In this document: one piece after another, positions 1 through 31,675 of the stretch
How the letters are laid out: each line of letters begins with the position of its first letter
Numbering within the stretch: position 1 is the first letter of the stretch
The notes under the pieces: generated by a model
The model's input: the letters and a program-made list of their open reading frames with translations, nothing else
Databases searched by the model: none
What the model was told of the DNA's origin: nothing
From: Paragordius varius
Lineage: Eukaryota; Animalia; Nematomorpha
Direction: 5' to 3'
Length of the DNA stretch: 33,000 bases
Assembly: GCA_964247055.1 (NCBI GenBank)
Contig: OZ176054.1
Location: forward strand, 2,170,001 to 2,203,000
Program-made: the position numbers and the translations under genes

Positions 1-443
1 TAATTCTTAGATCTTGCAAGACTCTTTTACCTGACAATTTGGTTTAAATTTAACTTAAATGAAAAAAAAATACATAAACGAACTTTGAATTGTTTCCGAT
101 TTTTATCGCGAGGGCTTCTTCATAAACCTAAACTATAATTAATTTATGAATATTATACAAAAAATATTTAATTCGGTATTCGGAATTTAATTTTATTTAT
201 ATACAGTATGCATTTTATTGTCAGTTAAGTATTTTATTGCCAGTCAAATAAAAGAAATGGTTTATCAAATGCGTAAAATACTGCTCCACAAAATTATTTC
301 ATACTGCACATATGAAAGAGGATTGACGTGAGAATTAACATAGGCTTTAATTTGATGGATATTTTTTTATTACATTCGGTCGACACATAAAAAAATTTAT
401 CCATGTAAGTAAATTGATATTTTTTTATATTACATATTTGCAG

Positions 444-3400
444 ATATTTCGTCTTGATACAAATCATACGGCATAAATTGAGTCGAAAAAAGTGTTTTAC
501 CCTCATTGGATTCATTTGGATTTCGGCATTCGCCATTTCGATTCCTAATCTGTTGTATTCACACATCCATACATGGAAATATAGCGATGGCACTAAAAGG
601 ACTGTATGTTACCTGGAGTTTAAACGTGACCGGGATTCTTTAATGTATATAATTTAGGGGTTTTTTTTCCTTTAACGAAATTAAAATTATTATTATATTG
701 AGTTTTTTAATGAAATTATATTATTGTCTAAAAAATGTCGAGAGAGCTAAAAATATTAAAATTGAATTTTGTGTTGACGCGTCCATTTTATGCAAATCAC
801 TTTAAAATGTGTTTTTTGTTTTCAACTATATCGTTTTTTATTATGGGTAAACAAGTAAAAATATCAAAGTTATATGTTTGAAAAATTTTGATAAGAAAAC
901 GCTTATCTAACACTTTATTACCTATTTTGATTTGTATGGCATGAAGAATACTTTTTAAGGCAAAAAATCTCGAAATCTAAAATACGTAATAAATCTAATT
1001 AATGGAATAATAAGATTAGCTTTTACTTTTTATATAATTGTATATTCTAAAATTTCAAGTGCTCAAATCCACCTAAAGGACTAATTTCAAAATAATAATT
1101 TTTAAAAATTTCATTAATTTTATTAAAATACATTTTTATTTGTCAGGTTTTAGCCATTTATTGTGCAACTTATGTTTGATGACATGTTATATTTCGGTAA
1201 TTTTAAATTGTTAATCTTTTTTTAAAAATGCCTCTTTGAAATTTGGTTCACTATCATAAATATTTTTTAGGATATTGTGTGCGATACACCTGATTAAAAC
1301 ATATAAGATTATTTTTTGAAATTTCGGTAGATTTGCTTTCTGCTGCCAAGTAGTGTTTTATGAATTCCATTTTTGAAAATTGTAAAAATACAGTCAATTA
1401 AATATGTAACTAATTAAAATGAAAAATTTTATACATGGCACCAGATATGTGCGCATTAAATCCTCTTTTAGTATTTAAAATACCGAAATTTCCAATGTAT
1501 GTCTCTCGTTAATTGTATTAAGTATATATTACCTCAAATGTTAAAACACTTTTTTACAAAAAATGTTTATATGTGGCTACTCATTTGACATTGTCATAAA
1601 CGAGTATTTTTTTGGAAAAAAAAGCAATTATTCTTGAGTTCAATTAGTTTTAATTAAATTTTTAATTTTGATTTTTTGATATTTAAATCAAATAATTACA
1701 TATTCAAAAGGATACAATGAAATGAAAAATTAAAATTTTAATAATAATGACCTCTGAAGAAATTACCCACATTCTATATAGACAATGATATACTTTATTT
1801 TTTATTTTGTTTAAAAAGCACTAATTCACATTTTCTTTCAAACATGCAACTAATCAAATTTTCTAATTTAAAATAGCTGACGGGCTATAAATACATGTAT
1901 TGATTTTATAGCCCAAAAAGTCCATACAAGCTACATATTTAGCTCGCTTACTTAATATATATACAGTAAAAATTAAAATAATACACGGACAAAATGTAAA
2001 AATATAAAGACAAAATTGTTTTAAAAGATAACCCCAGACGATTTTAAACCTTATTATTTTAAACATTCATTGTTTTAAACTGCAAAGTGTAAAATAAAAT
2101 ATATATTGGTGATAAAATCAATGACATATTTTACGATTGTTAATAAATGCTTTTAATATAAAATAAGGGTTAAAAAGTATTTGTCTTTTGAAAAAAAAAT
2201 TTCTTTATATTTTTACGTTTTTTTCCGTATAATTTTAGTTTTTACTGCATAAAAAATCGGAATTACCAGTTAAAGCCATTTTAATTATTATATCAACAAA
2301 AATTGTAGAAATAATTCATGACAACTTAATCCCAGTAAAAAAACGTTAAAAATCCTGCAAGAGTAATTAATTCATTTTTTTAGACATTAACACGAAATTG
2401 TTGTTTGATGGATATAGTTTTGGCTACATGACTTTAAATTTGCCATAAACGAATCTAAATATTCCATCCTTAAAATTTTTGGTTTTGACTCCTTAACATA
2501 TTTGATTTTTGGTTAAAAACCCCCTGGTCGCCATTTTAAAGGAATTACTACATTTTTTGTCTTATCTTAAGTGTTCAAAATTACATTTTTTTGTTAAAAT
2601 CTATTTTATTTTTATAGATATGATCTCTTCCTTATGGTAGTAACATACTTTATCCCTGTAACGATTTTAGCCGTTGTATATTTCCGTATAGGCCGTATCC
2701 TATGGTCAGCCGAAATTATTGGGGAGCATACGGAAAAACAGCTGTACAACTTGAAATGTAAAAGAAAAGTAACATTTTTTTTACAATTTTCACATTTTGC
2801 TAAGAGCCAAAAAAGAGTTGTAGATATAAAAAACTACATTAATATTTAATTTATTTAATGTGGTTGGACAAAGCTTTTTTTATCTTTTCATTTTAAATTA
2901 AATTTGGATTCAAAGAAGTTAACTACCAAAGATATCTTTTCGTTTCGTTAACTAATGAATTGTTAGTAATCTTATAACGAATTCTAAACTCTATAAGATT
3001 AAAAAATATATATATTAAATAAAGTAATTATGTGACAATATTAAGGAATGATAAGAATATCATTTTGTGTCAACAATTTAATTAATATTCATGTAAGGAG
3101 ATAAGTATACTAATATAAATTAAATTATATCATAATACGTATTCTTGAGCATATCACCTATAAACATGTTTATATATGACTTAAGAAAAAATAAACTAAA
3201 AGTCAAATGTAAAATCCATGTAAACACTGACTGTTTTAAATCAATAACTTTTTTATATGCTAGAAAAATTAAATTTTAATCTATAAAAACGTGATTAAAA
3301 TATTGTTTATAATTTCGCGCGATTTGGCCGGGCTTGAATAGAAAACTGATTTAATATTTGAGGAGTCACGCTCCAATCAATAATTGGAATGCGACAAAAA

Positions 3401-5334
3401 ATCTATATTTTAACTTATTTCTTTGTGCTTACCTTTTATTGAAAATATTGTTGCATAAAAAATAATAAAGTTAAGAAGAAACATTTTTTCCATTTTTTAG
3501 TGCTAATTTGAGATTTACAAAAGAGACATATATATTTATCTGAAAAATATTATCACAATACATGTGATGAAGAACAAAAAGCCTTTTGTAAACATTTCTT
3601 TGCTTATATACATATTGGTCTCATAGCTAAAACTTGAAGGCTTTTACTAGATTCGGGCTAGATATCTAATTAAACTTGGCTTATAATTATAGGCTAAAAA
3701 TCAATTTAAAAAATAAATTAAGTTTTAAGTCTATACTTTATGTTTATAAGTCAGTAGTTTTTATGTCAAATTTGCAATAACTAATTCATATGACTGTAAG
3801 CCAATCCATCTCTTTTGAAATATATAATACATCAAATTTGCACATAAAACTCAAATTTTATGGATACATTCGTTACAATTAATCCATGGCGTTATATATC
3901 ATGGATACTAATATATTATTTTTCTAGGTTGTTAAAATGATGATATTGGTTACCAGTATTTTTGCAATTTGCTATCTTCCATACCAAACATATTTTTTGC
4001 TTCAAAAAATTTATCCCAGAATCACTCAACATGCCGCTACACAACACGTCTTCCTAATACTCTATTGGTTTGCAATGAGCAATTCCATGTACAATCCATT
4101 CGTTTATTGTTGGTTAAATGGCAGGTACAATATATCTATATAAATTATTTTTTTTCTTTTTTTGCTCCAAATTTGCATATCGGTTGAGTGAAATTGCTCC
4201 AAATTTGCATATCGGTTAATTGATATAATTTTTATTTGAGTATACATTCGAGCATAAAGTGATTAATGAAAAAAAGCTTTTCGTTGTTTTGAAGTCTAAT
4301 TTTACAATTTATTAAACATTTGTTATTCCCAAAAAACCAATAAATGAGAAATTTAAACCAATAAACTTTAATTTATAATTTAGAAATTCATTTTCCAACC
4401 TTCTATCAACTATAATTTACAAAAAACGTTTTAAAAATAATATGATCAAAGTGTCATTATCAAATCCCAACTTTATAAAAAGATTATAAGTTTTTTTTTG
4501 GAAATATATAATAAACAATTCGAATTTCGCTAACTTTATCCGATATTGCCGGTTTTTAAAAATTGTTTATAATTCAATACGTTTTCTACCATTTTATCGT
4601 ATTTTGGCCTTTTCGTTGTTTTGAAAAAATCCCGAGGATTATATGGTGAATAAAAACCCCCAATTTGTAAATATCACAGTTTTCAAACGGTCCCTCATCC
4701 TCCATGGATTAATTTGATACTGACTGAATTTAAATACTTACTATAATATATCATTCCCAGGTTTCGAAATGGCTTTAAGTATGCTTTCCGATGGTGTCCT
4801 TTCATTCATGCGGAGGCGCGACCACGAACATCAAGCGAATCTTTTTACAGCAAAAACACAATCAATCGCACAGTATCCGCCGAAATTGGTAAGGAAGCTA
4901 AAGACCGCTCAGTTTCTTCACCCACCAATGAAAATGGCTATATTCCAAACCAAAGCATTGGACCAAATGTTAAGTATGGACCTCGACTCACGATCCCAGG
5001 AACGTACAATACTAGCAGCCATAGTAAAATTGTATCGAACAAAGGACGGGCCAAAAAAGATGAAAAAACCCTGGTTATAAATTATTTCGGCGATAAAAGC
5101 TCAACTCCCTTCCTATCTAATCCTGGTAATAACACTCTTCATGCATGCAAAAAATATCTAGTCCTATCTCCCAAAAAGTTAAGCATTTTTAATTCCTTCA
5201 CCGCAAATAAACCAAAAACATTAAAGGTAACACGCAAAAACAATGCACATTATAAAAGTTTATATTTGCAAACCGGATTACCAGAAAATGATTTGAATAA
5301 TTTTATACCAAGTAATACCAGCAAATCTATCTAA
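444..5334 (+). CDS. Tachykinin-type neuropeptide receptor (rhodopsin-class GPCR), 5'-partial; exons 444-644, 2618-2768, 3928-4124, 4761-5334
   Basis: GT-AG junctions are phase-consistent. Translation runs from the end of TM3 ((R)YFVL) through TM4, TM5 (YFIPVTIL..VY), TM6 (FAICYLPYQ) and TM7 (WFAMSNSMYNPFVYCWLNG|RFRNGFKYAFRWCPF). The TM7-helix 8 segment closely resembles insect TkR99D and vertebrate TACR receptors. The last exon is open for 191 codons to TAA at 5332-5334. TM1-TM3 lie upstream of the window. Confidence 0.9.
4162..4217. repeat. Perfect 24-nt direct repeat (ttgctccaaatttgcatatcggtt x2, 8-nt spacer)
   Basis: Copies at 4162-4185 and 4194-4217, in the GPCR intron just after the 4125 donor. 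Confidence 0.9.
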
Positions 5335-7665: not shown

Positions 7666-8013
7666 ACAGAATATTTTTATACCCCCCTAAATTTTGAACG
7701 TAGTGCATATGCAATCTATGGCTTTTATGTGCATTGTTCTAAAATATTTGATATTTATAATTGTAAAATAATTCCTATCCCAAATGCCGTCAAACTTTTC
7801 CTTGTTACAGCTCTTATTAATTTCTTTTTATCATATATCCAAATTTTAGAATTGAAAAGTTGAAAATAAATTGAAATAATATTTTTATAAATATAAGTTG
7901 AGATAATTATATTTAAGTTTTAATTTATTTTACTAAAATTTTTTTGAAAAACATTTTAAAATGCATTTATAAAAGATGCAAAAAATATTATATGCAATGA
8001 TTACGTATTCTAG

Positions 8014-8368
8014 AAAGTATTAAATCGTTCTATGGAACCTATAAAGGAAAATAATAAATTAAAAAGTGAATCAAAAAATAAAAAAGAAGGGTCGAAACAT
8101 GGTGAGTTAATAAAATTATTTAGATATTATCCGAATATCTAACGGCCGATATCAACCGATTCCGAAAAATTCAGTGCTTTTAGAAACCTCCAAAGCTAAT
8201 ATCGAATCGCAATCGGGGAACGAAGCAGATAAAAATGAAGTACGAATATATATAAACTAGATCAATAATTTATTACCCGAAAATCATTTGGAAATTAATA
8301 AACAAATGGAACATATTTTCAAAGAGATCGATAAAAATTACACGAAAAATAATTGTCAAATATTGTGA
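8014..8368 (+). CDS. Orphan low-complexity ORF; exons 8014 (or ATG 8032)-8101, 8124-8239, 8261-8368, joined by 22-nt and 21-nt introns
   Basis: Removing gtgagttaataaaattatttag (8102-8123) and gtacgaatatatataaactag (8240-8260) gives a continuous frame: (KVLNRS)MEPIKENNKLKSESKNKKEGSKHDIIRISNGRYQPIPKNSVLLETSKANIESQSGNEADKNEINNLLPENHLEINKQMEHIFKEIDKNYTKNNCQIL*. Unspliced, each junction leads to a stop. No family recognised. Confidence 0.55.
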
Positions 8369-8414
8369 AAATAATTTAAACCATCTGATCAATCGATAAA
8401 AGTTTAGGTATCGC

Positions 8415-8658
8415 ATGAGTGCCTTATTTAATTTTCGTAGTTTGTTAATTGTGATAGTTTTATTTATATGTACATCAAAATACATCAAAAAGTTTTTGCC
8501 GACTCTAATAAATAAGAACAAAGGAGGGTAAAACAAAAATTTATTTTAGATTATATACAACTATTTGGAAAGCATCCCGTATTGGTGAAAGACTTAGTTT
8601 ATACGTTTCATTCAGTTGTTTATGTTTGGGATTAAGCGTTTTATTATGGGGTATTTGA
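8415..8658 (+). CDS. TMEM167: Protein kish (TMEM167 family, small Golgi membrane protein); exons 8415-8527, 8550-8658
   Basis: Spliced product [38 protein letters not shown]|[35 protein letters not shown] (73 aa) matches the kish consensus (MSAIFNFQSLL.VILL.ICTC.Y...NK.G..G.FWK.ARIGER.SPYV) end to end. Confidence 0.93.
8528..8549 (+). other. 22-nt GT-AG intron in kish
   Basis: Sequence gtaaaacaaaaatttattttag. Retention gives an immediate TAA and a frameshift; removal restores the conserved NK.G-..WK..RIGER continuity. Confidence 0.9.
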
Positions 8659-9011
8659 TCAATCATTTACATTAGATTGAAACAATTAAATATTTTTAGC
8701 CTTTAATCTTGGAAATGCAGATTAATATATATTTTTAGAAATTATATTTTTATTATATGCACAATATTATAATAAATTTAAACAATATTCTATGTATTCC
8801 TTAATTTTAATTATTATTCAATCATATTATTTAAATATTCTAGCACATATCATTAATCTGACTTAAAGACATTTTTCATTGCAAACGTTTTAAAATAGCA
8901 AGTTGACAATAGTATAAATGATTATAAAAAAATAATATTTATTATGGCTAGCTTAAAAGTTACCATTTTGTAAATAGCATTACTTGCTAGAATAGTACAA
9001 CTATCTTATAT

Positions 9012-9300
9012 ATGAAAGGCGAAGGTCAGGCGGAGGTATATTGTACGGGGCCCCCTTTTAATAATGGTCCAAATGCAACAAAATCATTGAGTGGCTATTA
9101 TTATTTGAATAATCAATACACCAAAATAATATTAGTTTCTCTGAGATTGAAAATAAAAATATTTTATTCGTATTTCCACCGAATAGTTGGAAAACTGATC
9201 CGAATTAAGGCCAGACGGATTTTTTGCAAAGTCTTTCAAGATACCAGCGAATAAATGTGGAATAATATCTGAAATATTGTATATTCCCATCATAATAAAC
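9012..9300 (+). mobile_element. Possible highly degenerate pogo-like (DDE_1) transposase remnant
   Basis: Fragments across frames (NILFVFPPNSWKTDP; PDGFFAKSFK) resemble the FxPPxxSHxLQPLDxxxFxxFK motif. Several frameshifts are needed. Confidence 0.22.
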
Positions 9301-9421
9301 TTGGATTAACGGCAACCTATAATAATAATTAGTTCATTAATCATGCACTTTTCGCTTTTAGAAATGAGGTCCTAATATTAAACACCCTTAAAATTGCAGC
9401 TACTTTCACCAAAATAATAAA

Positions 9422-9455
<34 letters not shown>

Positions 9456-9459
<4 letters not shown>

Positions 9460-9733
9460 ATTTACAATTTAAATCCACCCTGGAACATTTCGAATCATTC
9501 CTGAACAATTCAAACTCACCCTAAAAAAATATTTGTTTTCGGGATAATATAACTCTTCATTAATATTAAATAATTTTTACGACATAGTTTATTATTTTTT
9601 CAGCATTACATTAATTTTAAACAGAATTTCATATTTTAATATTATTAAATAAAGGTAATATTTAATCGTAAAAAACACATAATTTAATTTAGGGTAAATT
9701 TGATTTTTCAAGGGTGAATTTGAACGAATGGTA
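9456..9733 (-). mobile_element. MITE family A, copy 1
   Basis: Starts taccatttaca directly after a (TA)n run at 9426-9456, has decayed 21-nt subterminal repeats and ends gaatggta. Interior is the reverse complement of copies 3 and 4. Confidence 0.8.
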
Positions 9734-10825
9734 CATAAAATTTTTGTTCCATATCTATGAATATATTTTGGAGTAATATTTATATTACACGGTTAAATTT
9801 CAATTAAAATAAAAAAATGCCTATTAGCTATAAATGATTGTTAAAAACTATATATATTGAACAAACAACAGTTTTTAATTTTCTACCGATTAAAATTTGG
9901 GTATTTAAAGGCTGAAACAAACAGTTGATTTAATTTAAAATTTGCTGTCATAACCTTTTTATTGATTGAGAAGGTTGAATAATTTTTAATTATATTTATA
10001 ATATATTTTAAGTCAGTACTTTAGCCATTTAGTAAAAAATCCAGAAATAACTTGGCGGAAAAAGTTTTAGTTGGTGAATGTTCAAAATATGGCTTTAAAA
10101 CTGCATTTGAAAAGTCACAGAATGGATATTTTAATTTGGTCCAATATCATATTTTTGAGAGAATTACACTCGCTGATGCAATAACCCAAATCATAATAAG
10201 CGATTTTTTTCTCACAATTTAAATAATGGAACTGAAAAAAAAATTTGTTTATGGCATCAGACATGTAAATTAAATCGCTTTTTACTATTTAAAATACTCA
10301 AATGTCCAATAACTTTCGATAATATATACCACTCAAATACTATGAATTTTATATATTTTTAATATTTTTTGGAATATTTTCCAGATGCATTGTTTATAAC
10401 ATAAATTTATAAAATTAACTAGGTGACTTAGATTGTTTTTAAATATGTTAAAATTAGCCAATATGAGAATAAAAATACTCAAATGTATAATTACGGAGTT
10501 AAAAAAATCATATCTTGTAATAAATGAAAAATTAATTATTGATTTTATGAAATATATTGGATATCATGTGCCAAAAATAAATACAACAATTTTTAAGGTA
10601 AAATAATTAATATATAAAATAAATGCAGGTAAAATAGACAGAATATTTTTATTTATTATTATGACATGTTTTACCTCTATGATTTTTGTGTGCCGCAAAA
10701 TATTTTCAATAAAAACTTTTTTGTAAATCCTACAAAATTTTCTGCCAATCCGCCATATTCGAATATCACGAATGTCAATACAAAAATAAGGTATATCAGA
10801 ATCTATATTTCGTGTTATATTTATA

Positions 10826-11085
10826 TACCATTTACAATTCAAATTACCCTTGAACAATTCATATTCACCCTAATAATAAATTAGGTGTTTTCGGGCTAAT
10901 ATAAATCATTATTAATAAGAAATATATTCTTATGGTTGGTTTATTACTTTTTCAGTTTTATATTAATTTTAAACGTAATTTTTTTTTATTATATAAAAAA
11001 ATATTGGTAATTTTTAAATTTAAAAACATATTTCTTTTAGGGTGAATTCGAATTGTTTAAGGGTGAATTTTAACTGTAAATAGTA
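10826..11085 (-). mobile_element. MITE family A, copy 2
   Basis: TIRs taccatttacaattcaaatt... and ...gggtgaattttaactgtaaatagta; same orientation as copy 1. Confidence 0.85.
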
Positions 11086-11320
11086 TATTCAATTTTGTAA
11101 TATCTAAATACTTCTTGGAGATATTCTGATGATTCAATAAAAATATTTAAGAAACCAAACTTATTATACAAAATATATCCAATTCTCGCTTTCTTTCAGC
11201 TAAATTTGACATATATGAAAAAATTATAACACCCATATCGTATTTTAAAATGAATATAAAATGGAAAATGCTTTGTATGGGATTTTAGTGTACATTGTAT
11301 ATTAGGATCCATGATATTTA

Positions 11321-12415
11321 CCAGGTGTAGTCATAGGTTTTTACTGTTTTTTGGTACATAAAACTTAATTAGGAGATCAATATATTATTCAAAATATTGT
11401 ACATCGGTTTCTACAGACGCCCATCTCTCAAATAATATATGAGTCCCGAGCCAGTAAAACTGATTGACTTTTGCGTCATATAATTTTTCAAACTATTTTT
11501 CAACGTCTTCGAGATTATTAACGTGCTGCTCTGCGATGCATTAATCATAAGGCGCCATGTCAGGAGAGTTCAACCGATGCGAGATAATTTTTTTTCGAAG
11601 TGATTTTAAGGTGTCTTTCAATCGCTGTGTGTGAGACATAGCATTGTCATAGAGCAAAACTACCATGTCTTCTTTTTAGATTAATCCATGGTTTAAAATC
11701 AATTGTTGGCGGTAGGTATGTGTACTAACGGTTTCATTGGGTTCTAAAAGTGTACAAATAGATCCCACCAGACACATATTATAGCTTGCCAAAGCGATGG
11801 AATTGGTGTTGGTGCGACCTGGCCAGGTCAAAACTACAATTTTTTTCGCTTTGGATTTAGAAAATTAAGCCCCTTCTCATCACCTGTTTTGATGCAAAAA
11901 TAATTTCCTTTCGTGGCATCAGGATTTTTCAAGTAACTTTTCGATTTTCGTTATGACATTAATTGATTGCATGACACCCATTCACCGAAGTTTATTGGTT
12001 TTCCCATTGCATGTGGACTTCTTTTGATTGTTTTTTTGCAATATATGAAATGCTTTCCATGTTGGGTTTTGCTTGGGTCATCCATTTACTCTTGCACTTT
12101 ATCATCTTCGCAGTTGGATAGTTGCATAGTCTAACAGAGGCACGCATTCTCTTTTACATTGAAATCATATTTAATATTTCAAAACCATGTTTCTCATGTG
12201 TTAATCGATAAAGCATGTTCACCATATGTTTGTGACAGGAAACGATTTTTAACAGCTTTTTTTTCCTGGTCTTAATGCGAACCGCATATAATGAAAAAAA
12301 TAAGATTTTAGTTATTGGCCAGCTCAATTGTGTGTGCCTGTCGTTTAATGGCAGAATAGGGTTGTAATCAATTAATCGTCTGCATCTTTTCGCTATTTTT
12401 ACTTAATGAAACCGG
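11321..12415 (-). mobile_element. Near full-length decayed mariner (Mos1-like) transposon
   Basis: Minus-strand fragments occur in correct order: MGKPINFGEWVSCNQL (WVPHEL region), KTGDEKG..NPKRKK..PGQ (first D), ICVWWD, EPNETV..TYRQQL, VLLYDNAMSH (second D), NSPDMAPYD (YSPDLAPSD). TA+ccaggtgta TIR at 11319-11329 and a degenerate ...accggta at the other end. Many stops and frameshifts. Confidence 0.88.
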
Positions 12416-12649
12416 TATTAATTTAATAAATGGTAAAAAGCCCAAAGTAGCTAATACTCTTTAAAAATTTAAATCAAGTGATTTTTTAGTCAATATAATT
12501 TGCACAAAATTTATAACTCCGTTGTCAATTTACTTAAATACATTAAGTTTGATTTAACTCATCGCAGAATAATTTAATTGAATATTTTAAAAAGTATCTT
12601 AGGCATTAAGCCGAATTTAAAAATATGTTGTTTAGCCTTTTAGGCGCAC

Positions 12650-12950
12650 AATTTTTTTTTAAAATGTAAAAATTTAAAAGAAATCCTTATCCAAAATTTT
12701 TTTACCGCCTTTTTTTATATATTTTTTTAAATCGCGAACGCAACAAGCAAATAAATGTATATTATCGTTAGAAAATGTAAATAGTTAACTTTAAAAAGCT
12801 TTCAGGCAACCTTTTACTAGCAAAATCTTGATATATTTTGATTTTAATATCAGCTGTTTGTTTCAATCGTATTTTGGAGCTGTCCAATTTTAGAATCTAC
12901 AAGTTATGAACCTGTAAAAAATGTAAGTTTATCACATGAGAAAAATGTTT
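12650..12950 (+). repeat. Diverged interspersed repeat, copy 2 (pairs with ~6450-6730)
   Basis: Same collinear blocks as copy 1; boundaries approximate. Confidence 0.55.
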
Positions 12951-13466
12951 GATAATTAATTTTTTACTATGATAACTTTTAAAACGATAGTTTATTTGCA
13001 AAATTGAGCTCTGGGATAAAAGGTAGACTAGGATAAAAAGGTAAAATTGAAGTGTTAAAGAAATAAACTTTGTGATACTGTAGATTTTTGCATTTTTAGG
13101 TAATACCTTTTTTTAAATATAATTTAAACTAGGTAATTGAAAATGAAATTCGGAGAGCATGCGAATTCCATGTTTCAGACGGATGGTTATTATCTACACA
13201 TGACCGTTTGTCATTTCTAAAATAAATTTTTGTGGAAACATTTTACATTATGAGTGATACATTTCTAGAAAGTTATTAGCCAAAAAGTAAATAAGGCAGT
13301 ATAATTGGCTAGTAATAGTAAAAAGTCAAAAAATAACTATTAGCCAATAATAATGCCCTAAGTTTTCTTTAATATTCTAGCAATGTATACTTACTCATAC
13401 TGTATATTACACTATTTGGGCATAAACCAATCTTAATGCAAAAAATGATGAGTTCTATCATAAAAC

Positions 13467-16400
13467 ATGAAAACAAAGATCAATATATTACAAATTGATA
13501 TTAGGTTATCACGTAAATGCCCAAAATCACATTTAAATCCGGCCTTCGCTAAGGAATTCTCCAAATCACACAAAGTTATTGAATTATTTATTTAATAGAA
13601 GGATACACATGTAAAGAATTATAATTTTAACACAAACAATGATTGGTATCGGCGATATTTCTACGGTAAAGGTAGTAATTATTTTTAGCATTTTTATTAG
13701 GGTAAATTTTGTCGGGTTAATGCCCGTTTATATTCATTATCAGTCAAATACTTAACAACATATGTTTGATTAAAATTAATATAAATTATGGTATAAAACT
13801 GATATTTGATGAAAAAACAATGCGATATCAGAAAATTTTGTTGAATTATTAATGGTACTAAATATTTTGATTCAATTACAAATTAAACGTCTAGATTTTG
13901 TTTTGTTTAGTTCAAATGCATACTCTGCATTTCAAGGATTCTGACTAGATTTGTCAGATCACTGGGTCATAAACTCAAATATTTATATATAAAATTTGAA
14001 TAAGGCCTAATTGCTGAATAAAGGTATTGATCTAAGTATTATAAATTGTTATAATTTAATCACAAAAATGGACCTTTTTTTTCATATCATAACAGTCAGC
14101 TCTGGCCAGGCGAGTTCTAGGCTTTCACAGGCCCTTAATACAATTATTACGCTTCAATTAAATAAAAAAATTTTTTTATTGTAGAAGCTTTAAAAACTCA
14201 TTTTTGTGTTAATGACAGAGCACACAAATTATATGGGTAAATGTTCATATCAAACCGAAAAAAGCAGAAAACAAAAACAGATCTTTATATTGTCAATTAC
14301 TAAAGGCGAAAAAGGTATTTTTTGGTCAAATACTTTAGTTTTAGTAAAAACCAAACACCTCTAATATATAATTTTTGTATGGAATCAATAATACTATAAT
14401 AATTGTTATTTAGCACGGAATCACAAGATAGTTTTTTGGACACCACAGGTTTTTTTATAAAATTGAAAATATTTTTAATTTCCAACCATTTTAATAAACA
14501 TGCTTTAGGATATTCAGACAACCAGTCTAACTTTCGATAAAGATATTAAGGATGTTTTAAAACCGACCCGCATTGCAGAGTATTTAAATCTTCATCATTT
14601 AACTTTAAATTACATATTAAATTTTTATTTCTTCTAGATTATTTGATTATAAACACAACCTACGTATCGATAATAAAAGTATCAGAGAATATTCCGATCA
14701 AAATATCCAAAATGTAATAAATTTGCCCACTATTAAAATTTTAATACATATACAAATTATTTATTTTAGAAATTGTTGAAATTGGAAGGAACTATGGTAT
14801 ATATTAATTTTAATTCATGCATCAAGATCGTATTTATACATGTGGCTACTTTAAACTTATAACACTGAAAAAGTCAAAAATATTTTCCACATGATATATA
14901 TAATTATTCACACATTCATTGAAATTGACATGTGAAGTGCACCTCTAGACCGTTTCAACGATTAATATTTTAAAATCAAACTTGCATAGTATTTATAGCC
15001 ATTTTAATAAATGCACATCCATCTTTATACAAAAAATAATATTATGAAGACAAATAATAAAGGACAAATATTTTTTAAAAAACAATCATAATTTTAAAAT
15101 CTTTATTAAAATAAAACTCATCCGGATTACAAAATAGGTAATGGAGGTGTAAATTATAGATACGCAAAATTATATAATTAAAATTGTAATTAATAACTAA
15201 AAATGAAATGTATGTTAAAATATTTATAACCCACCATAGTCAATAAAACAGCTCAAAATTGGTGTTGTATTTGCCACTCAAGAACAATCTATAAGTGATG
15301 ATCTATTGAATAACGGTTAATTAATTGATCAATTAAATTTTTATCTAAAAAATGAATTTTTAAATAATCATGTGATTTATAAATGTAGACCAATATACAT
15401 GTAATATTTGTTGATATTAAAGAGTGTGGTAACCAAAATTTTGAAAAATTTCTCAATTTGCTCGGACATAAGATTTCGTTACATGGTTGGAAAAAGTTTA
15501 GCGGCGGCCTAGATTGCAAAAGTAATTTATTATACCATTTACAACTTAAATTCACCCTTAAACAATTCAAATCGAACAATTCAAATTCACCTTCAAATAA
15601 AATATATGTTTTTTAAGATTAAAAATTACCTATATATATATAATAAAAATTTTGTTTTAAAATAAAATAATACTGAAAAAATAATTAACTATGCCATAAA
15701 AATGTATTTATATTAGTTCGAAAACACAAAATTTATTTTTAGGGTGAATTTGAATTGTTAAAGTGTGAATTTGAATTGTTCAAGAATTTAAATTGTAAAT
15801 GGTATATATATATATATATATATATAATGTGCATCAACAAATAGTGTTATATATTATATTATTTTTTTTCCAAAATTTATATACAATGGTGTTGGGTTTT
15901 TGTCCTTTTGATATGCGCAAAATTAATCAAAAATATAAATCAGTTTTCCAAAATTGGATATTCCCAATAAAAAATATTATTTAATGTCAATTATACAGAT
16001 AATACAACAGGACACCAAAGTTTTTACACAAATTTTAAAGGGTTCGAAATTATGTTCCATGTTTCCACTTTGCTTCCATATTCACAGTCCGACCCTCAAC
16101 AAGTTTACCATATTTTATGATCTTTATTACAAATATTTAGTTATTTAAAAAAGTGAGTTTAATGAATTTTAATTTATTTTTTATGGCATAGATTGAAAGA
16201 AAACGACATATAGGGAATGATTTAATCGTTATTGTTTATAAGGATATAATTCATAATACTTCTATGCAAAATAATTTTATGGAACCAAACCTGATACAAT
16301 TACCGAAATTTGAATCAAAAGTTACGCGTAAGATTACATCGAATAATTTTTTTAAATTACATTTTTTGACTTAATATCAAATTTACTAATTTTGATTTTT

Positions 16401-16897
16401 TTAGATATATATGTCATAGTCAACTACAATGAACAAATGGACACATATAGGCAAGTTTTTAATCTAAAATGTATATATTGGACATTTGAGTATACATTTA
16501 TATAGAATATGTACAGAATTAAAATATTTTTTCCTATGTGATTAATAATCCTCTAATATTATTAAACACTTTGCAATGTTTCTAGCATGAAAATTTATAG
16601 CAAAAAAGGTGTACCGCCTTTTGGACCCAACGTAACCAGCCTATACCATAATGCTCAATTATTTCGTACAATGCTTCTAACTAAATGTTTGTAAATTTTA
16701 TTTATTTTCATTATTTAAAAAATAATATCTTTAAAATATATTTTTTTTCGGGATATATATATTTTTAAAAAAAATTAGGCATAAACGGCGAAGGGGCGGC
16801 CTTATCCACACCAAAATTCGCTCAAAAGAAAGAAAGATTGATTCAATATCTCATGCAAGAAATGTATGATAAAAATGTCAAAGTTAGGCCAAAATAA
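13467..16897 (+). CDS. GARNL3: RapGAP-domain protein, GARNL3-like (~388 aa); exons 13467?-13574, 13599-13671, 14219-14314, 14414-14448, 14509-14579, 14638-14713, 14770-14796, 15240-15315, 15423-15521, 15999-16102, 16192-16327, 16405-16450, 16586-16686, 16779-16897
   Basis: All junctions are phase-consistent. Motifs: DWYRRYFYGKEHTNYMG, KLLKLE, LKIGVVFA, FEKFLNLLG..I.LHGW..FSGGLD, TTGHQSFYT..KGFEIMFHVSTLLPYS, IERKRHIGND (Asn thumb intact), HIYVIVNYNEQMDTY, MKIYSK.GVPPFGP, FRTMLLTKCINGE.A.L.TPKFAQK. The last three motifs favour GARNL3 over Rap1GAP/SIPA1. The start codon and the terminal exon are tentative. Confidence 0.88.
13575..13598 (+). other. 24-nt GT-AG intron in the RapGAP gene
   Basis: Sequence gttattgaattatttatttaatag. 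It is 3n but contains an in-frame TAA, is flanked by open frames, and the downstream exon is homologous to GARNL3. Confidence 0.7.
15533..15804 (+). mobile_element. MITE family A, copy 3 (in RapGAP intron)
   Basis: TIRs taccatttacaac... and ...ttgtaaatggta, followed by (TA)n to ~15826. Confidence 0.9.
16451..16585 (+). other. GC-AG intron in the RapGAP gene
   Basis: Donor AG|GCAAGT. Its phase 2 is required to join DTY to (S)MKIYSK; the nearby GT alternative is phase 0 and incompatible. Confidence 0.85.
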
Positions 16898-16996
16898 TAC
16901 TTTTGCATCCCCATTTTTTCTGGAATTCATAATATATATTGTGTTATATGGAAAAATATAATAATAAATTTAACCATGTACCTTAATGTAATATAT

Positions 16997-18135
16997 CACT
17001 GTGTGCAAAAAAATTTTTAACGAAAAAATTTTAATTCGTGAGATAGCTTATGACCGTGCATTTATTTGCCGTAAAAATTATTATTTGTTGACAACATAGT
17101 TTTTGAAATATTAGGAGAAAATCGAAATCGGGCAAAAAGTGAATATTAAGGATAATTAAGTATAATTCAAAAAATAATGATTGAATTTGAGATATTATGG
17201 TGTATTATCATTTTAGGAGATATTTTCAATATATAAATAGCATAAAATCATATGGTTAGGGTTTCTATAAAATTTTTACTCAAACGATGGCGTTTTTCTT
17301 TTATCACACTTAAAAGACAAAAAAATTTAATGAAACTATATTAAAATATTTTTTTTTAATTATTTACTACCTAAACTCACTATTAAAATCTTAATCCTAT
17401 TTTATTCAGTATAAAATACTTATATATGAAAATTAAACCAAAAATTAGTTTTTTATTTTCGCATTTTTTTGTCATCTGGTTTATGAGTGTATAAAAAGTT
17501 TATACTGTTTTTTTGGATTCTTACATGAGTGGGAATCATTAAGTATATAATTTATGCAAAATAGAATTTAAAGTAGTGGAATATCAACCAACAATCCTTA
17601 AAATCCCTGTAATAAGTCTGTTATATGGGAAATTAATATTTGTATTGGGATTTGACGGATTGTTGGTTGTATTCTACTACTAAATCCTATTTTACATATA
17701 TTATATATTTTATAATTCGCACTCATGTAAGATTCTAAAATATGCTAAACACTCACAAACCAGATGACAAAAAAATGTAAAAATAAAAAACCATATTTTT
17801 TGGTTTTTGATATATAAGTTTTTTTACCGAATAAAATATGGATGTTAAGATTCTAATAGTGATTTTGCTAGTAAATAAAAGAACATTTTAATATAGTTTT
17901 ATAAAAAAAATGTCTTGTGAGTGTGTTAAAAAAAACGCCATCTTTTGAGCTGAAATTTAGAGACCCTAACTATATAATTTTAGCCTATAAATAAATATTG
18001 AAAATATATCCCAAAATGATAATAAACCATAATGTCTAAAATTCAACCATTATTTTTTAAATTATCCTCATAAGCTATCTCATGAAAAAATTTTTTTTCG
18101 TTAAATCAAAATGACCCTCTTTTTTGCACACAGTA
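16997..18135. mobile_element. Foldback-type palindromic element (~1.14 kb)
   Basis: Arm 16998-17607 is the reverse complement of 17647-18134 along its length (e.g. actgtgtgcaaaa/ttttgcacacagt; gagatagcttatga/tcataagctatctc; gatggcgttttt/aaaaacgccatc; ttttttgtcatctggttt/aaaccagatgacaaaaaa; acaatcc/ggattgt). Loop ~39 nt; an extra ~95-nt insert lies in the left arm (17054-17146). No ORF. Confidence 0.92.
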
Positions 18136-19078
18136 TATATATAACATATAGGCTTTAAAATAATTTCTAGGAGAAAAACGTGTGGATCCATTTAATTCGG
18201 CATAAAATTTTGTTAACCATTGATAAATGCGCCAAGAGAGCCGTTTTTTGAATCACCTCAGCTTTATTCCCTACCTCCTTGTAAAAAATACGGGTTGACT
18301 TAAAAATAGAAATCCTTTAAATCTGTGTGCGAAGCACGTTTAAAAAATAGACACATTCAGATTATAAAAATAGAATGCTATTAGTTTTTTTACTAATAGG
18401 CCGAGAGTGTCTGAATTATTTTTGTATTAACCTATCGGTTAAGCCCCGCCCTTTTTGAAAATAGGGTTTTTAAAATAGACCTCACATGAATTTTTTTCTA
18501 AATGCGCCGAGGATGACACATCATCGTTTTGAAATAGTTGGTCAGTTTAGCCACGAATCCTCATAAATGGAGTTCAAATAGATTTCTAAGCATACGAAAA
18601 AACTAGGCCTATTCAAAGTCAAAAGAAGTGAAATTTTATTCATCTTTGTATGGGCAAAGGGTAACTAAGTTGACTTTAGGTTTTGTTCTTAGTTATCTAT
18701 CTACACTGTATGAAAATAGGCATTTTTGATCGATCCAGTTTTTATATCTTTAAATTTTTATAAAACCAAATTTAAAATCAGCGTTTCGTCGAAGTCTCAG
18801 ACACCTGTGACCGGGTAGGTTAGCATTAATATAAAAATATCCAGAAATGTAATTTTTACTACGGTAAAAAATGGGGTATCAATTGAAATTCGCCCATCAA
18901 TCCAGATGAGATTCATTATTATTATTAAACATTTAATAACAATTTATTATAGAATAAATTAAATGATCAAATAAATAAATAAATAAAACATTATAATATA
19001 CATTTAACGTTACAAAAAAGTTTTAATTGGACTCGCGGCAATATCACAATCTTACATAAAATTGTGCTAAGCTTTGTG

Positions 19079-22000
19079 TTAAGCAAATGGATCCTGTTCA
19101 AAACCCTAATATTTTTGAAATATATATTTGAAAAATATAAATAAATAATATATTTTTTAAATAAAAAAAAATACCGTGGTAACCATCTTTGATTTGGCTG
19201 TGTCTGAAAGAAAAATACAAAAATTAAATAATTACAAGAGAAAAAAATATTTAAATAATGCTTTAAAAATAAACCGTTAAAATTGGCCTTTGATAATTGA
19301 AACGGATCCTCCCCTGATAACTCCAAAGAACCAAAACTTGGGACATTCTACAATTTGCATTTTTGAAAAAGTTAAAAAATTTCAATCGTTTTCAATTAAA
19401 TAAATGATATGATTTTTTTAAAATGTTAGATAAATTATTAAAATTATTCAGTAATTATGGCGCGGATAAAAAGCTTTCATTATATATTGATAGCAATGTA
19501 AAAGTCAAAGTTTCACAATTTATAAAATTCTATTTTACGGGGATAATAAAATATTAAAATATTAATTAGTTGGTATAATAATCTACCGCAAATACACATT
19601 TTTTGGTTCAAGATTAATTTAATTAACCTTTAAAGACAAAAATATTGAATTTTAAAAAAAAATAAACGTTAAATTGCATCAAATCCTTTTCCAACTCTTC
19701 GATTTGAGTTAGTAGGGAATACTTTTCAGTTTCTAATTCGGGTATTGATTTTTTAGGGGTTGTTGACATTGACACACCAAAAGATGAAATATCAACCATA
19801 TTTGATTTGGATTTTAATAATTTTTGTAAGTCCTCAATCTATATTGTAAAACGAGAAAAATGATAAATTTTATTTTTTAATAATTAAAAACCTAAACCAA
19901 TAAGTTTTTAGCCGTTTCCTAAAAAACCGGTTCTGAAACCGCAATTACTAAAATCTATGAAGATTTTTATCAGAACTTTTAACCATTAACCTCTTTATGT
20001 ATTCACATTTAACGAAATAATAAAAGTATATTTTTAGGTGTCAAAGGTAAGCTCACAAAAACTTTGCTTTTTATATATTTCTTTTTGTAATTAAATCTCA
20101 CATTGTATTCTAATCAGACATTCCTTTTCAAAAAAAATTAAAAAACATTTTTTAAACCGAAAACAAGAGGATGTTTTAATTTCATAAAATGTAAATATAT
20201 TATTATCGGACAAAATAAATAAAGTTAAGAGCATATACTTCAGGCTCTAATGCAGATATATTATTTTTCAATTCGGTTATTTGAGATTCGTTTTTCTTTT
20301 CACGTATAAGTAGCATGTCAATTCTAACAAAAACAAAATAGCTATAATATAATTATAATTTAAATATAAATACGTTTTATGTGTAGGAATTAAAATTAGT
20401 ATATTTTACAAACGACATTTCATTTAATTCTATTTAATTATCCTTTATCGTTATATTACGGATTTTAACAACTGTTATTACAAAACATAACCAATCCGTT
20501 ATTTACCATTACAATAATCAACAATGTTTAGAAAATAGGGTAAAACTACATCTAAAATAATAAAAAATTCATCAATAAATTTATAAAATACGACCATTAA
20601 ACGTATTTTCCAAAAAAATTAAATTTGGATTTTAAAAAGCAAGCAACGTAAAGTATGTACAAACTTTTGAATATTTTTTTCTTTTTCACTTTCTAAAAGC
20701 TTAACAGACTCCCCTACACCGGCTTCGATTTCATGTTTAAGGCGATTGTATTCTTCTGATTTGGTGCGGAGTTCAGTTTCGCGCTCAGAAATATTATTTT
20801 GTAATTTTTCGGTATTTCTGTCAAAAATAAATTTAATGGCTTTTTTTAAACAAATAAAAGGTTTATAATATGTTTCGTAAAATTTTTAATAAATTTACTA
20901 AATTACCTATAAAAATATAAATTATGCATTTAGCCATTTTTATGGTTTAATAATTAAAACTAATAAAGTTATTAACTACACATGGCTCTAAAATGTTTGG
21001 ATGGGTTCCTCTATTCTCAAATAATATGTAAAATATTTTGCAGTTTAACCAATAAACCATATCATAATAGCTATTAATTAAATGATAAAAAAGGTAAATT
21101 ATTTTAAATGTTTACTTACGATAAATTGGTCAAATTTAAGACAAAGTTTTTAAATGCAAAAACAAAACAATATTAAAAAATGATTCCCCCCCCTTAAAAA
21201 ATACAACACTTATTTTAAATTATAAGTGTTTTAATCGCCAATGTAGGTTTGATATACCTAATCTATATTTTTAAAACCTTGAACATTCAATCTCATTACA
21301 TAAATTTCATGCAATAATAAATATTTAATATATATATACTCTTTAAGTTGTGCTAATTCCTTTTCAAGCCTTACTATTTCGTTTCCACCATCTAATTTTT
21401 CTAGATCGCTCTGCGTCAAAGTTATTTGTGGCTCTGGCTAAATATTAATTTCAAGTAAAACTTAAAATTATACAGATAAAACTTAAAACTAAAGTATATA
21501 CATTTCAAAAAAAAGACAACCATACTTTTTTTAACCTTAATTTTATATTATTATATGAACCAATTTTATTTACAATTTTGAATCATGTAAATGAATGTAT
21601 TAACAATATCCATGAAAAATCCCTATTTTACAAAAATACAGAAGTAAGTTATTTACATAAAGGATTTAAAAAATATGATTGTCTTTAAACATTAATTTTT
21701 GCCTTAGTTTTTCCATTTTGAGTTAAAAATTTAGATTTTTATGGTATTTTCAACAAAAAATTAAACATTTTTTAAGAAAAAAGATATTAAAAAACTAAAT
21801 GTCTTACATTAAAATGTTTAGCAAGTTCTATAAGTTCCGGGTAACTTTGAGACGGTGGTTCAATATTATTTTTAACTTTTTGATGAATCAAAAACCAAGC
21901 CAGTTTGAAATGATCTTTATCGAGTGCTCCAACGAGATTAGGGTCGCATATATTCCTAGAAAGAATATGTAAAAACGAAAATGTAAATGGTTGCAAATGC

Positions 22001-23278
22001 ACAATTTTTCTTATATTTTAACATTAATTTTGGTTATTTAAGGAAAACGTTATTTGCAGCCTAGGCTACTATCAAACTCTTTTTGATAAACAAAACACGG
22101 TATTTTTCAGTAATTTCAAATTTCTAATTACGGTAAAAATAACTAGAACCATTACATTATATAACTATAGATAAAATTTTTGCCTGTCTACTCAACATTT
22201 TTTAATTAACCCTAAATATAAGTATAAAACTTAATTTTATAATAAGAAAGTTTAATTTAATTGATAAGCCACATAATTTTCCATAATAGGGGTCAATAAA
22301 ATAGGGAATCCGTATATATTTAAAAAATTGGAGTTATATTTATAGAATTATCAAAATAAAAAATACCATATATGTGCCAAAGTTAATTGAGGTAAACTCG
22401 ATTGCAGAAATAAATTTCTACAGGTAAGACCATCAATTAATCCTGTTTCAGGATCACAAAGTTGGGCATAAGCCTTTTCCGAACTATCTGTCATCAGTTT
22501 AATGGGGGAAGTTTTGACGGTTTTAATATCACCAGAACTAAAAATGAAAATGTTTAAAAAATCAAAAAGATAATTATTTAATAAAAATTAAATATTATAA
22601 TTGAACGTGCAAAAGTATAAAGATAAAATTAGAAAAGCAAAAGACTAGGTTTTTTATCAAGAAACTATATTTTTAACCTTGATATGTTTGAAATCTAATA
22701 TATCGTTTTGGTAAATGCAAAATAATGAAAATGGGTGCAGTCAATTGTACAATAATGACATAAGTTATATAAATCAAACATAAATTATAATTAGTTTTTT
22801 CTAAATCTTTTTATGCATATTTAAGATTTTGTTGTAATATAAACCTTTGACTAGAGGTTGAAAATGACCGTTTTGACAAATCTGGGGTGGAAGTCAGCAA
22901 TTCTTTAGGAACTTCCTTGGGTAATGGACCAATTTTTGCTTTATTAATCAAAAACATAGACTAAGATAAAATTGTTTAGTACTTACAATATAAAACTCTT
23001 TCAAATTTAATGATCCATCCTTATCTAAGTCACTCATATCCCAAATTTGAGCCAAAGTTTCTAACGGAATATTTGTTTGAAGCATCATCTAAATTAAATT
23101 TTATTTTTTTTAACTGATGCAATTAAATTAGCAGTAATAAAAATACAAGATAAAAACCTCTTTGGCTTTAACGCCTGATAATAACCCGTTTTCGCTTATG
23201 TCATTAAAAATTGTTTCAATTTTATACCTTTCCTGTGATGACTGTAATTTAAGGTAAAAACGTATATACCTGTTGCAT
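19079..23278 (-). CDS. EPS15: Eps15/Eps15L1-like endocytic adaptor (~421 aa: two EH domains, coiled coil, two DPF motifs); exons (5'->3') 23278?-23270, 23241-23158, 23088-22987, 22960-22845, 22537-22367, 21955-21808, 21437-21340, 20817-~20665, 20323-20239, 19838-19668, 19347-19275, 19203-19175, 19105-19079
   Basis: EH-a: IFNDISENGLLSGVKAKE|MMLQTNIPLETLAQIWDMSDLDKDGSLNLKEFYI|SMFLI. EH-b: FLQSSLPQLTLAHIW|NICD....GALDKDHFKLAWFLIHQKV..IEPP, similar to Eps15 EH3. Then EKLDGGNEIVRLEKE (cf. Eps15 KELDTLNNEIVDLQRE), coiled-coil exons, EDPF and QDPFA*. Junctions are phase-consistent; the first exon and the 20665 donor are tentative. Confidence 0.85.
22961..22986 (-). other. 26-nt GT-AG intron inside an EH domain
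   Basis: Sequence gtaagtactaaacaattttatcttag. Retention frameshifts to a TGA; removal restores EF.i.M.LI of the EH fold. Confidence 0.92.
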
Positions 23279-23437
23279 ATTGCTTTGTCGACAAATCAAA
23301 TATTGATTTAATTAAAAGAGGTGGAGAAAAAGCCCTGAAATTCAAGTATTACACATTCATTAAACGGTATGTTGATTTTCGCAGTTTTACTCCGTTTCTC
23401 AAACTAGTAATTCGATAAAATTGATAATCAGGATAGA
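23279..23437. promoter_or_regulatory. Probable bidirectional promoter and 5' UTRs between EPS15-like (-) and SIRT1 (+)
   Basis: The inferred start codons are divergent and only 159 nt apart. No specific motif was assigned. Confidence 0.5.

Positions 23438-31675
<8,238 letters not shown>

Follow-up and report, generated by a model that had tools for sequence, protein, structure and literature searches.

Homology supports introns of 22 and 26 nucleotides beside introns of up to kilobase size in a 33-kb window of animal DNA

Six stretches of 21 to 28 nucleotides (nt), each with the ends of a spliceosomal intron, lie in a window of 33,000 nt from contig OZ176054.1 (positions 2,170,001 to 2,203,000 of the forward strand; all coordinates below are those of the window). 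Two of them fall within conserved genes, one encoding a Kish/TMEM167 protein and one an Eps15-like protein with EH domains. Judging from homology on both sides of each gap, we consider it likely that at least these two are genuine U2-type GT-AG spliceosomal introns, and with 22 and 26 nt they are far below the usual minimum length of animal introns. In translation, the exact removal of these gaps, and this alone, restores full-length conserved domains. The 28-nt stretch at the start of the Eps15-like gene is probably also a U2-type intron. The six candidates are as follows.

8102-8123, plus strand: 22-nt GT-AG candidate in an open reading frame (ORF) upstream of Kish; evidence from the reading frame, suggestive
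8240-8260, plus strand: 21-nt GT-AG candidate with an in-frame TAG, same ORF; evidence from the reading frame, suggestive
8528-8549, plus strand: 22-nt GT-AG intron of the Kish gene, GTAAAA...TTTTAG, phase 2; homology on both sides
13575-13598, plus strand: 24-nt GT-AG stretch ending TAA TAG, after a 36-codon ORF; evidence from the reading frame
22961-22986, minus strand: 26-nt GT-AG intron of the Eps15-like gene, GTAAGTACTAAAC...CTTAG, interrupting its first EH domain; homology on both sides
23242-23269, minus strand: 28-nt GT-AG candidate first intron of the Eps15-like gene, ATG CAA CAG / GTATAT...TACAG; anchored on the 3′ side only

On the coding strand, all six begin with GT and close with AG. 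A sequence-only reading of the window had listed these stretches before, and its coordinates, strands, lengths and GT/AG ends agree exactly with ours. It also counted two stretches with homology on both sides and one with homology downstream, which agrees with our result for 8528-8549 and 22961-22986 and for 23242-23269, respectively. Its further claim that all six are introns stands for the two that homology demands, while the other four are unproven.

Probable micro-introns in the Kish and Eps15-like genes

The Kish gene consists of two coding exons around the 22-nt gap.

8415-8655, plus strand: Kish/TMEM167 gene, recognized with Pfam
8415-8527, plus strand: coding exon 1, from the ATG; matches PF06842 with 37.4 bits as an exon alone
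8550-8655, plus strand: coding exon 2, stop codon TGA at 8653-8655; contains WKASRIGER, an invariant motif among homologues

If 8528-8549 is left in, the Kish frame meets a TAA at once. With the 22 nt taken out, the gene encodes 73 residues that align end to end with Kish proteins (95-97% of the query covered) and are colinear with six homologues. Invariant residues are kept around the junction, P29 and G38 upstream of it and WKASRIGER downstream. The DUF1242 profile matches the spliced product over its entire length (1-35 of 35) in a single stretch that runs across the junction, with 39.7 bits.

The second case lies on the opposite strand, in a gene that also offers introns of ordinary length for comparison.

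About 23278 to below 19600, minus strand: Eps15-like gene, two EH domains and coiled-coil exons
23089-23157, minus strand: 69-nt GT-AG intron, GTTTTT...TTTAG, in the first EH domain; EH homology over the junction
21956-22366, minus strand: 411-nt intron in the second EH domain, the long comparator; EH homology over the junction

Exon 3 alone matches the EH profile at positions 33-64 with 32.2 bits, and joining it to exon 4 across the 26-nt gap extends the match to 33-88 (43.3 bits). Exons 2 and 3 joined over the 69-nt intron cover positions 4-64 (42.3 bits), and the fully spliced first domain covers 3-88 (54 bits). Aligned with residues 7-90 of the Eps15 EH2 structure 1f8h, this domain shows no gap at either junction. 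In the second domain the profile crosses the 411-nt junction in a single stretch (16-86, 40.2 bits). The homology-anchored introns within the Eps15-like gene hence measure 26, 69 and 411 nt.

If the 28-nt stretch is counted, the Eps15-like gene starts, in order of transcription, with introns of 28, 69 and 26 nt, and its later ones measure about 250-520 nt. That this stretch is an intron is plausible from its sequence: the EH profile begins at residue 5 of the spliced product, with only three codons (MQQ) upstream of the junction. The same acceptor can be joined in frame to eight other combinations of ATG and donor, one of which implies an intron of 113 nt.

Candidates defined by the reading frame

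Three of the remaining candidates lie outside recognizable genes, and two of them share an ORF that precedes Kish.

8032-8364, plus strand: upstream ORF, unannotated, 111 codons; ends 40 nt 5′ of the Kish ATG
8365-8407, plus strand: 43-nt GT-AG candidate directly upstream of the Kish ATG; unanchored, from sequence only

Each of the six candidates either has a length that is not a multiple of three or contains an in-frame stop, which was the property by which the sequence-only reading had selected them. Its argument that each must be removed to avoid a stop or a frameshift is accordingly true, but it carries no evidential weight. We searched 520-nt tiles of the window by dynamic programming for the longest stop-free path with at most two removable segments of 18-32 nt. 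Chains of at least 311 nt, the length of the 8014-8364 chain, arose in 8% of tiles with GT..AG boundaries compared with 7-11% for five control dinucleotide pairs. Since the control dinucleotides perform like GT..AG, opening a frame is no evidence for an intron.

Coding potential and polymorphism provide weak hints in favour of the upstream ORF. In a codon model trained on confident exons, with open non-genic ORFs as the null, each of the three pieces of this ORF ranks at the 95-97th percentile, and in every piece the claimed frame outscores the other two. The piece downstream of 13575-13598 reaches the 67th percentile. For polymorphism we used contigs of the sequencing runs X1, X3, X4 and X5 (at least three samples from two studies), placed on positions 8000-13980. 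All four runs are DNA-like, with even depth and unspliced contigs that skip none of the proposed introns. X4 and X5 represent a diverged haplotype, in which 8037-8358 and 8656-8912 contain numerous single-nucleotide polymorphisms (SNPs) as well as small indels; this haplotype is therefore independent of the assembly. One SNP falls within 8102-8123 (8104 G>A, with the GT retained), and 8240-8260 contains a 1-nt insertion behind 8242 and two SNPs. Altogether, 4 of 43 nt in the claimed introns of the upstream ORF are variable, including the only indel, versus 10 of 290 nt in its claimed exons (p=0.09). These exons are also less variable than the 3′ flank (p=0.04), and 4 of their 10 SNPs are synonymous compared with 18% expected (p=0.09).

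Searches with the upstream ORF, which provides the flanks of 8102-8123 and 8240-8260, yielded no Pfam family and no homologue, and a query fusing the ORF to Kish retrieved no identical or near-identical entry. Likewise, neither flank of 13575-13598 has a Pfam match, and no homologue was found for the ORF at 13.5 kb. As introns, 8102-8123 and 8240-8260 stand at about even odds. The stretch 13575-13598 is probably due to chance, because its downstream piece attains only the 67th percentile.

It is doubtful that all six stretches are spliced and belong to a genome-wide class of 21-28-nt introns. The codon-model ranks, the enrichment of variable sites and of the sole indel in claimed introns, and the share of synonymous changes all speak for such a class, but each of these tests is weak (p = 0.04-0.09) and both the upstream ORF and the 13.5-kb ORF are without a homologue. 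Comparable ORF chains, moreover, occur in 8% of tiles whatever the boundary dinucleotides. About 3 of some 20 anchored introns are shorter than 30 nt, and 33 kb cannot show a genome-wide class. Pfam scans of further ORFs in the window revealed no other gene with micro-introns, and searches for stop-free chains elsewhere in the window gave nothing convincing.

Splicing of the 43-nt stretch 8365-8407 would bring the upstream ORF in frame with Kish. Because Kish proteins begin with MSA(L/I)F, the ORF is more likely a separate cistron or an upstream ORF than part of a Kish fusion. It might simply be a long upstream ORF, or it might precede Kish as the upstream cistron in a polycistronic unit whose acceptor at 8407 would be trans-splice-like; the 8407 end of the 43-nt stretch may alternatively serve as acceptor for a separate Kish transcript.

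Alternative explanations for the anchored gaps

To account for the Kish and Eps15-like gaps with introns of normal size, the splice sites would have to lie elsewhere. We enumerated all GT-AG pairs that leave both halves of Kish in frame, and the sole normal-sized alternative is a 58-nt intron at 8492-8549. In the first EH domain, the sole other frame-keeping GT-AG option is one of 94 nt at 22903-22996. Both thus satisfy the boundary dinucleotides and the frame, and the donor of the 58-nt option, GTTTTT, is of the same weak type as that of the 69-nt intron required by homology. However, the 58-nt option removes 12 residues, among them P29 and G38, which are invariant in the family, and the DUF1242 match falls from 39.7 to 25.6 bits and covers profile positions 1-24 only. 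Homology thus demands the 22-nt Kish intron. In the EH gene, the 94-nt option destroys the conserved EF...MFLI helix, replacing it with unrelated out-of-frame sequence, and by protein alignment the 26-nt intron is required as well. A segment that is intronic would have no cause to remain homologous and in frame, and we regard the use of normal-sized introns in these two genes as improbable.

Slightly less probable still is the view that the gaps are frame-breaking insertions in decaying gene copies, or that they are bypassed by recoding without splicing. Both gaps do break the frame if kept, and the case for splicing is itself sequence-based. Yet two independent genes are affected, each gap is an exact GT...AG at the break in homology, and the ORFs are otherwise intact. 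Across at least three haplotypes, none of the 291 nt from 8365 to 8655 is variable (the Kish coding sequence, the 22-nt intron, itself unchanged in contigs of four runs, and the 43-nt stretch). Over the 3′ flank, in contrast, 20 sites among 257 nt vary (p = 2e-7), a difference not expected of a decaying pseudogene, and in the upstream ORF 10 among 290 do (p=9e-4). As to recoding, animals are not known to use a translational bypass of 22-26 nt. The invariance of 8365-8655 could mean either that the tiny introns are constrained like coding sequence or that the haplotypes share this segment.

Assembly or sequencing indels are the least credible explanation, for the contigs of X1, X3, X4 and X5 match the window colinearly across 8102-8123, 8240-8260 and 8528-8549, the X3 contig also spans 13575-13598, and the diverged X4/X5 haplotypes exclude a common assembly error. 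The four plus-strand stretches are genuine genomic DNA and not assembly indels. The concern about such indels, raised when the candidates were first listed, is thus settled for these four, and the two minus-strand stretches lie outside the read region. Internal eliminated sequences of the ciliate type were also considered and rejected: the boundaries are GT/AG, there is no flanking TA repeat and the gene content is animal.

Splicing signals and a model for recognition

The anchored micro-introns are AT-rich, start with GTAAAA, GTAAGT or GTATAT and end with TAG or CAG. Six long introns in the neighbouring SIRT1 gene start with GTAA(A/T/C) or GTACAT and end with (T/C)AG or AAG. As far as these sequences tell, nothing sets the micro-introns apart in the chemistry of their splicing. 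In the 26-nt intron, TACTAAA offers a candidate adenosine 15 nt before the 3′ end; the 22-nt intron has a run of A that stops 10 nt short of the AG, and the 28-nt stretch has AAA 6-8 nt before its AG. This branch-point reading covers three sequences, which yield no consensus.

We propose that the gaps would be removed at the RNA level by an ordinary spliceosome. Recognition may proceed by intron definition, relying on GTA(A/T) at the 5′ site, (T/C)AG at the 3′ site and an interior rich in A, and the branch adenosine would lie about 10-15 nt from the 3′ end. The micro-introns are grouped towards the start of a gene or within a very small one, amid introns that are mostly 0.3-2 kb long. A modified splicing machinery, which the sequence-only reading had suggested, would not be required, given the precedents in myxobolids and Dicyema described below.

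Several points weigh against splicing of the two anchored gaps. Homology on both sides exists for just two junctions, the sequence runs examined are all DNA-like, and the case for splicing consists of DNA and homology. The read check spans the plus-strand stretches, Kish among them, and not those of the EH gene. A database search with the spliced Kish protein returned no identical or near-identical entry. The implied distance of about 10 nt between 5′ splice site and branch point is far below what the human or yeast spliceosome tolerates. Furthermore, the 69-nt intron demanded by homology has the poor donor GTTTTT. This donor is common to the 69-nt intron and the rejected 58-nt option in Kish; donor rules may be relaxed here.

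A broader claim would be that a slowly evolving, non-reduced bilaterian, neither dicyemid nor myxozoan, has a distinct class of 21-28-nt introns at gene 5′ ends beside introns of 0.3-2 kb. We hold this to be possible, at somewhat less than an even chance.

Neighbouring genes, composition and repeats

The genes around the candidates carry long introns.

24865-29930, plus strand: SIRT1 orthologue with six GT-AG introns; in-frame model, SIR2 profile
SIRT1 introns 1-3, plus strand: 24865-26271 (1407 nt), 26425-26922 (498 nt), 27071-27407 (337 nt)
SIRT1 introns 4-6, plus strand: 27488-28609 (1122 nt), 28776-29369 (594 nt), 29488-29930 (443 nt)
418-5333, plus strand: 3′ part of a tachykinin-receptor-like G-protein-coupled receptor (GPCR) gene; exon ORFs near 418-654, 2598-2780, 3928-4125 and 4747-5333
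27994-28320, also 9446-9528, 10824-11094 and 15524-15826: family resembling miniature inverted-repeat transposable elements (MITEs)

The SIRT1 model (24586-31251) stays in frame and free of stops through all six introns. Its exon pieces match the SIR2 profile at 4-53, 55-103 and 134-180, and one exon is identical to human SIRT1 at 34 of 49 residues (69%). Its last exon (29931-31251) encodes a C-terminal extension of 438 residues for which no relative was found among 5.8 billion clusters or 1.84 billion representatives; a protein language model gives it a weak resemblance to P-element/THAP9-type transposases (score 0.75), and the accompanying taxonomic hint, to Rotifera, is weak. SIRT1, whose likely first exon is the ORF from 23438, and the Eps15-like gene on the minus strand stand head to head, with candidate starts about 160 nt apart (23278-23438), an arrangement suggestive of a bidirectional promoter common to both.

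Introns of the tachykinin-receptor gene span about 0.6-1.9 kb, and the exons of this gene match the 7tm_1 profile at 83-146, 152-192 and 201-260. The exon for transmembrane helices (TM) 6-7 corresponds to residues 300-364 of human NK3R, and the next exon to helix 8 (residues 361-380) in colinear order. A search with a GPCR exon gave a weak taxonomic hint to Arthropoda. The intron at 4126-4746, which separates the TM7 exon from the helix-8/C-tail exon, lies at LN(G/K)R/F, and the exons abut at human NK3R 361-364. This position is presumably also an exon boundary in vertebrate TACR genes. An orthologue of this kind, with its colinear helix-8 exon, supports assignment of the genome to a bilaterian, in line with the origin first proposed for the window.

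The window has 25% GC throughout, with about 33% in coding sequence, 21% in introns and 25-33% at third codon positions (GC3). The MITE-like elements have terminal inverted repeats of about 82 nt that are 93% complementary, contain 21-nt subrepeats and are inserted in (TA)n tracts; in all four runs their read depth is 100-700 times the unique depth. The earlier description of the genome as non-compact and transposon-rich fits this repeat-rich region. Its statement that micro-introns and long introns coexist is borne out by the anchored introns of 69 and 411 nt in the Eps15-like gene and of 337-1407 nt in SIRT1. Within this single window, 2-3 of about 20 homology-supported introns are shorter than 30 nt. 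On the minus strand at 11544-12153, short ORF fragments resemble by eye a decayed mariner-type transposase, with no significant Pfam match. Rfam and tRNA scans of the window were empty.

Significance

Animal introns below 30 nt have been accepted only recently, and only in two lineages of parasites whose introns are nearly all tiny. If a conventional bilaterian genome with long introns splices the anchored gaps as proposed, the lower size limit of the metazoan spliceosome would not be bound to genome reduction, and extreme intron definition and exon definition would have to coexist within single transcripts. Should the broader 21-28-nt class exist, one animal spliceosome would handle a 22-nt intron and a kilobase intron in the same transcript, and the short mode would be the shortest of any bimodal, non-reduced animal genome. 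Standard pipelines, with minimum intron lengths of 20-40 nt, would silently break small conserved genes such as Kish. The two junctions in housekeeping genes would also offer a tractable system for asking how a branch point can be engaged at only about 10 nt from its 5′ splice site. The case stands as new only if the junctions are spliced in RNA and the species falls outside the known lineages.

Comparison with known short-intron systems

Tiny introns are familiar from unicellular eukaryotes, with lengths of about 25 nt in Paramecium, 15-16 nt in Stentor and 18-21 nt in Bigelowiella. Ciliates and nucleomorphs resemble the window in length range, in GT-AG ends and in introns that break the frame or carry stops, as selection through nonsense-mediated decay would favour. 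They differ in being unicellular and in having essentially only tiny introns, with no kilobase class. Human ultra-short introns are given as 43-65 nt and splicing of short introns as SPF45-dependent (PMC4463651, PMC8363638). They too are a minority short class in a long-intron genome, but are at least twice as long as those put forward here.

Among animals, myxobolid Myxozoa have median introns of 22-27 nt (PMC13644364). In myxobolids and Dicyema, the splicing signals are cut to GTA and AG, the AG is preceded by a few A residues, and both U2 snRNA and U2AF have their canonical form (PMC13644364). A survey of 51 genomes found no sub-30-nt animal introns beyond Dicyemida and myxobolids. The myxobolids Henneguya salminicola, Thelohanellus kitauei and Myxobolus rasmusseni have reduced cnidarian parasite genomes in which short introns dominate, whereas the genome here is bilaterian and most of the anchored introns are long. 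The tachykinin receptor, a bilaterian type, likewise argues against a myxozoan.

The other group is the Dicyemida. Their median intron measures 27 nt, and two thirds are shorter than 30 nt (PMC6543705); a mean intron of 38 nt and a GC content of 36.7% are also given (PMC6736024). Dicyema japonicum and Dicyema sp. share with the window a bilaterian affinity, GT-AG introns of about 20-30 nt, a 5′ signal cut to GTA and a repeat-rich genome (49% repeats; PMC6736024, PMC6543705, PMC13644364). However, most of their introns are below 30 nt, whereas the anchored introns here are mostly 0.3-2 kb, and neither a majority nor a median below 30 nt, the trait of Dicyemida and Myxobolidae, is seen in the window. 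The GC content of 36.7% in D. japonicum contrasts with 25% here. Dicyema has only two rhodopsin-type GPCRs, whereas the window contains a clear tachykinin-receptor orthologue, and the proteins encoded here are well conserved, as the SIRT1 exon illustrates with its 69% identity to human. Other candidates do not fit either: Intoshia linei, with a median intron of 57 nt, contrasts with the six SIRT1 introns here, each longer than 330 nt; Demodex has 31% GC and a median intron of 79 nt; and aphidiine wasps have a similar genomic GC, but their GC3 is 11-16% compared with 25-33%.

The best architectural match is the microintron class of flatworms, which the sequence-only reading overlooked when it placed introns of 20-26 nt mainly in ciliates, nucleomorphs and reduced parasites (PMC6530080, PMC4040987). 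Flatworm microintrons have modes of 37 nt in O. felineus (PMC6530080) and of about 32 and 58 nt in G. salaris (PMC4040987), and in O. felineus they stand beside a class peaking at 3 kb (PMC6530080). They occur in adjacent clusters, are biased to the 5′ end and are missed by default annotation settings (PMC6530080; PMC4040987). For the short introns of tapeworms, Tsai et al. speculated likewise about an altered splicing machinery, as cited in PMC4040987. In Opisthorchis felineus and other trematodes, cestodes, Gyrodactylus salaris and Macrostomum, as here, a short class exists beside kilobase introns in non-compact, repeat-rich bilaterian genomes. A comparable 5′ clustering appears here in two genes only, with 28, 69 and 26 nt followed by 411 nt in the Eps15-like gene and candidates of 22, 21, 43 and 22 nt in the Kish region. 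What distinguishes the window from flatworms is length, as the anchored introns of 22 and 26 nt lie about 10 nt under the flatworm modes.

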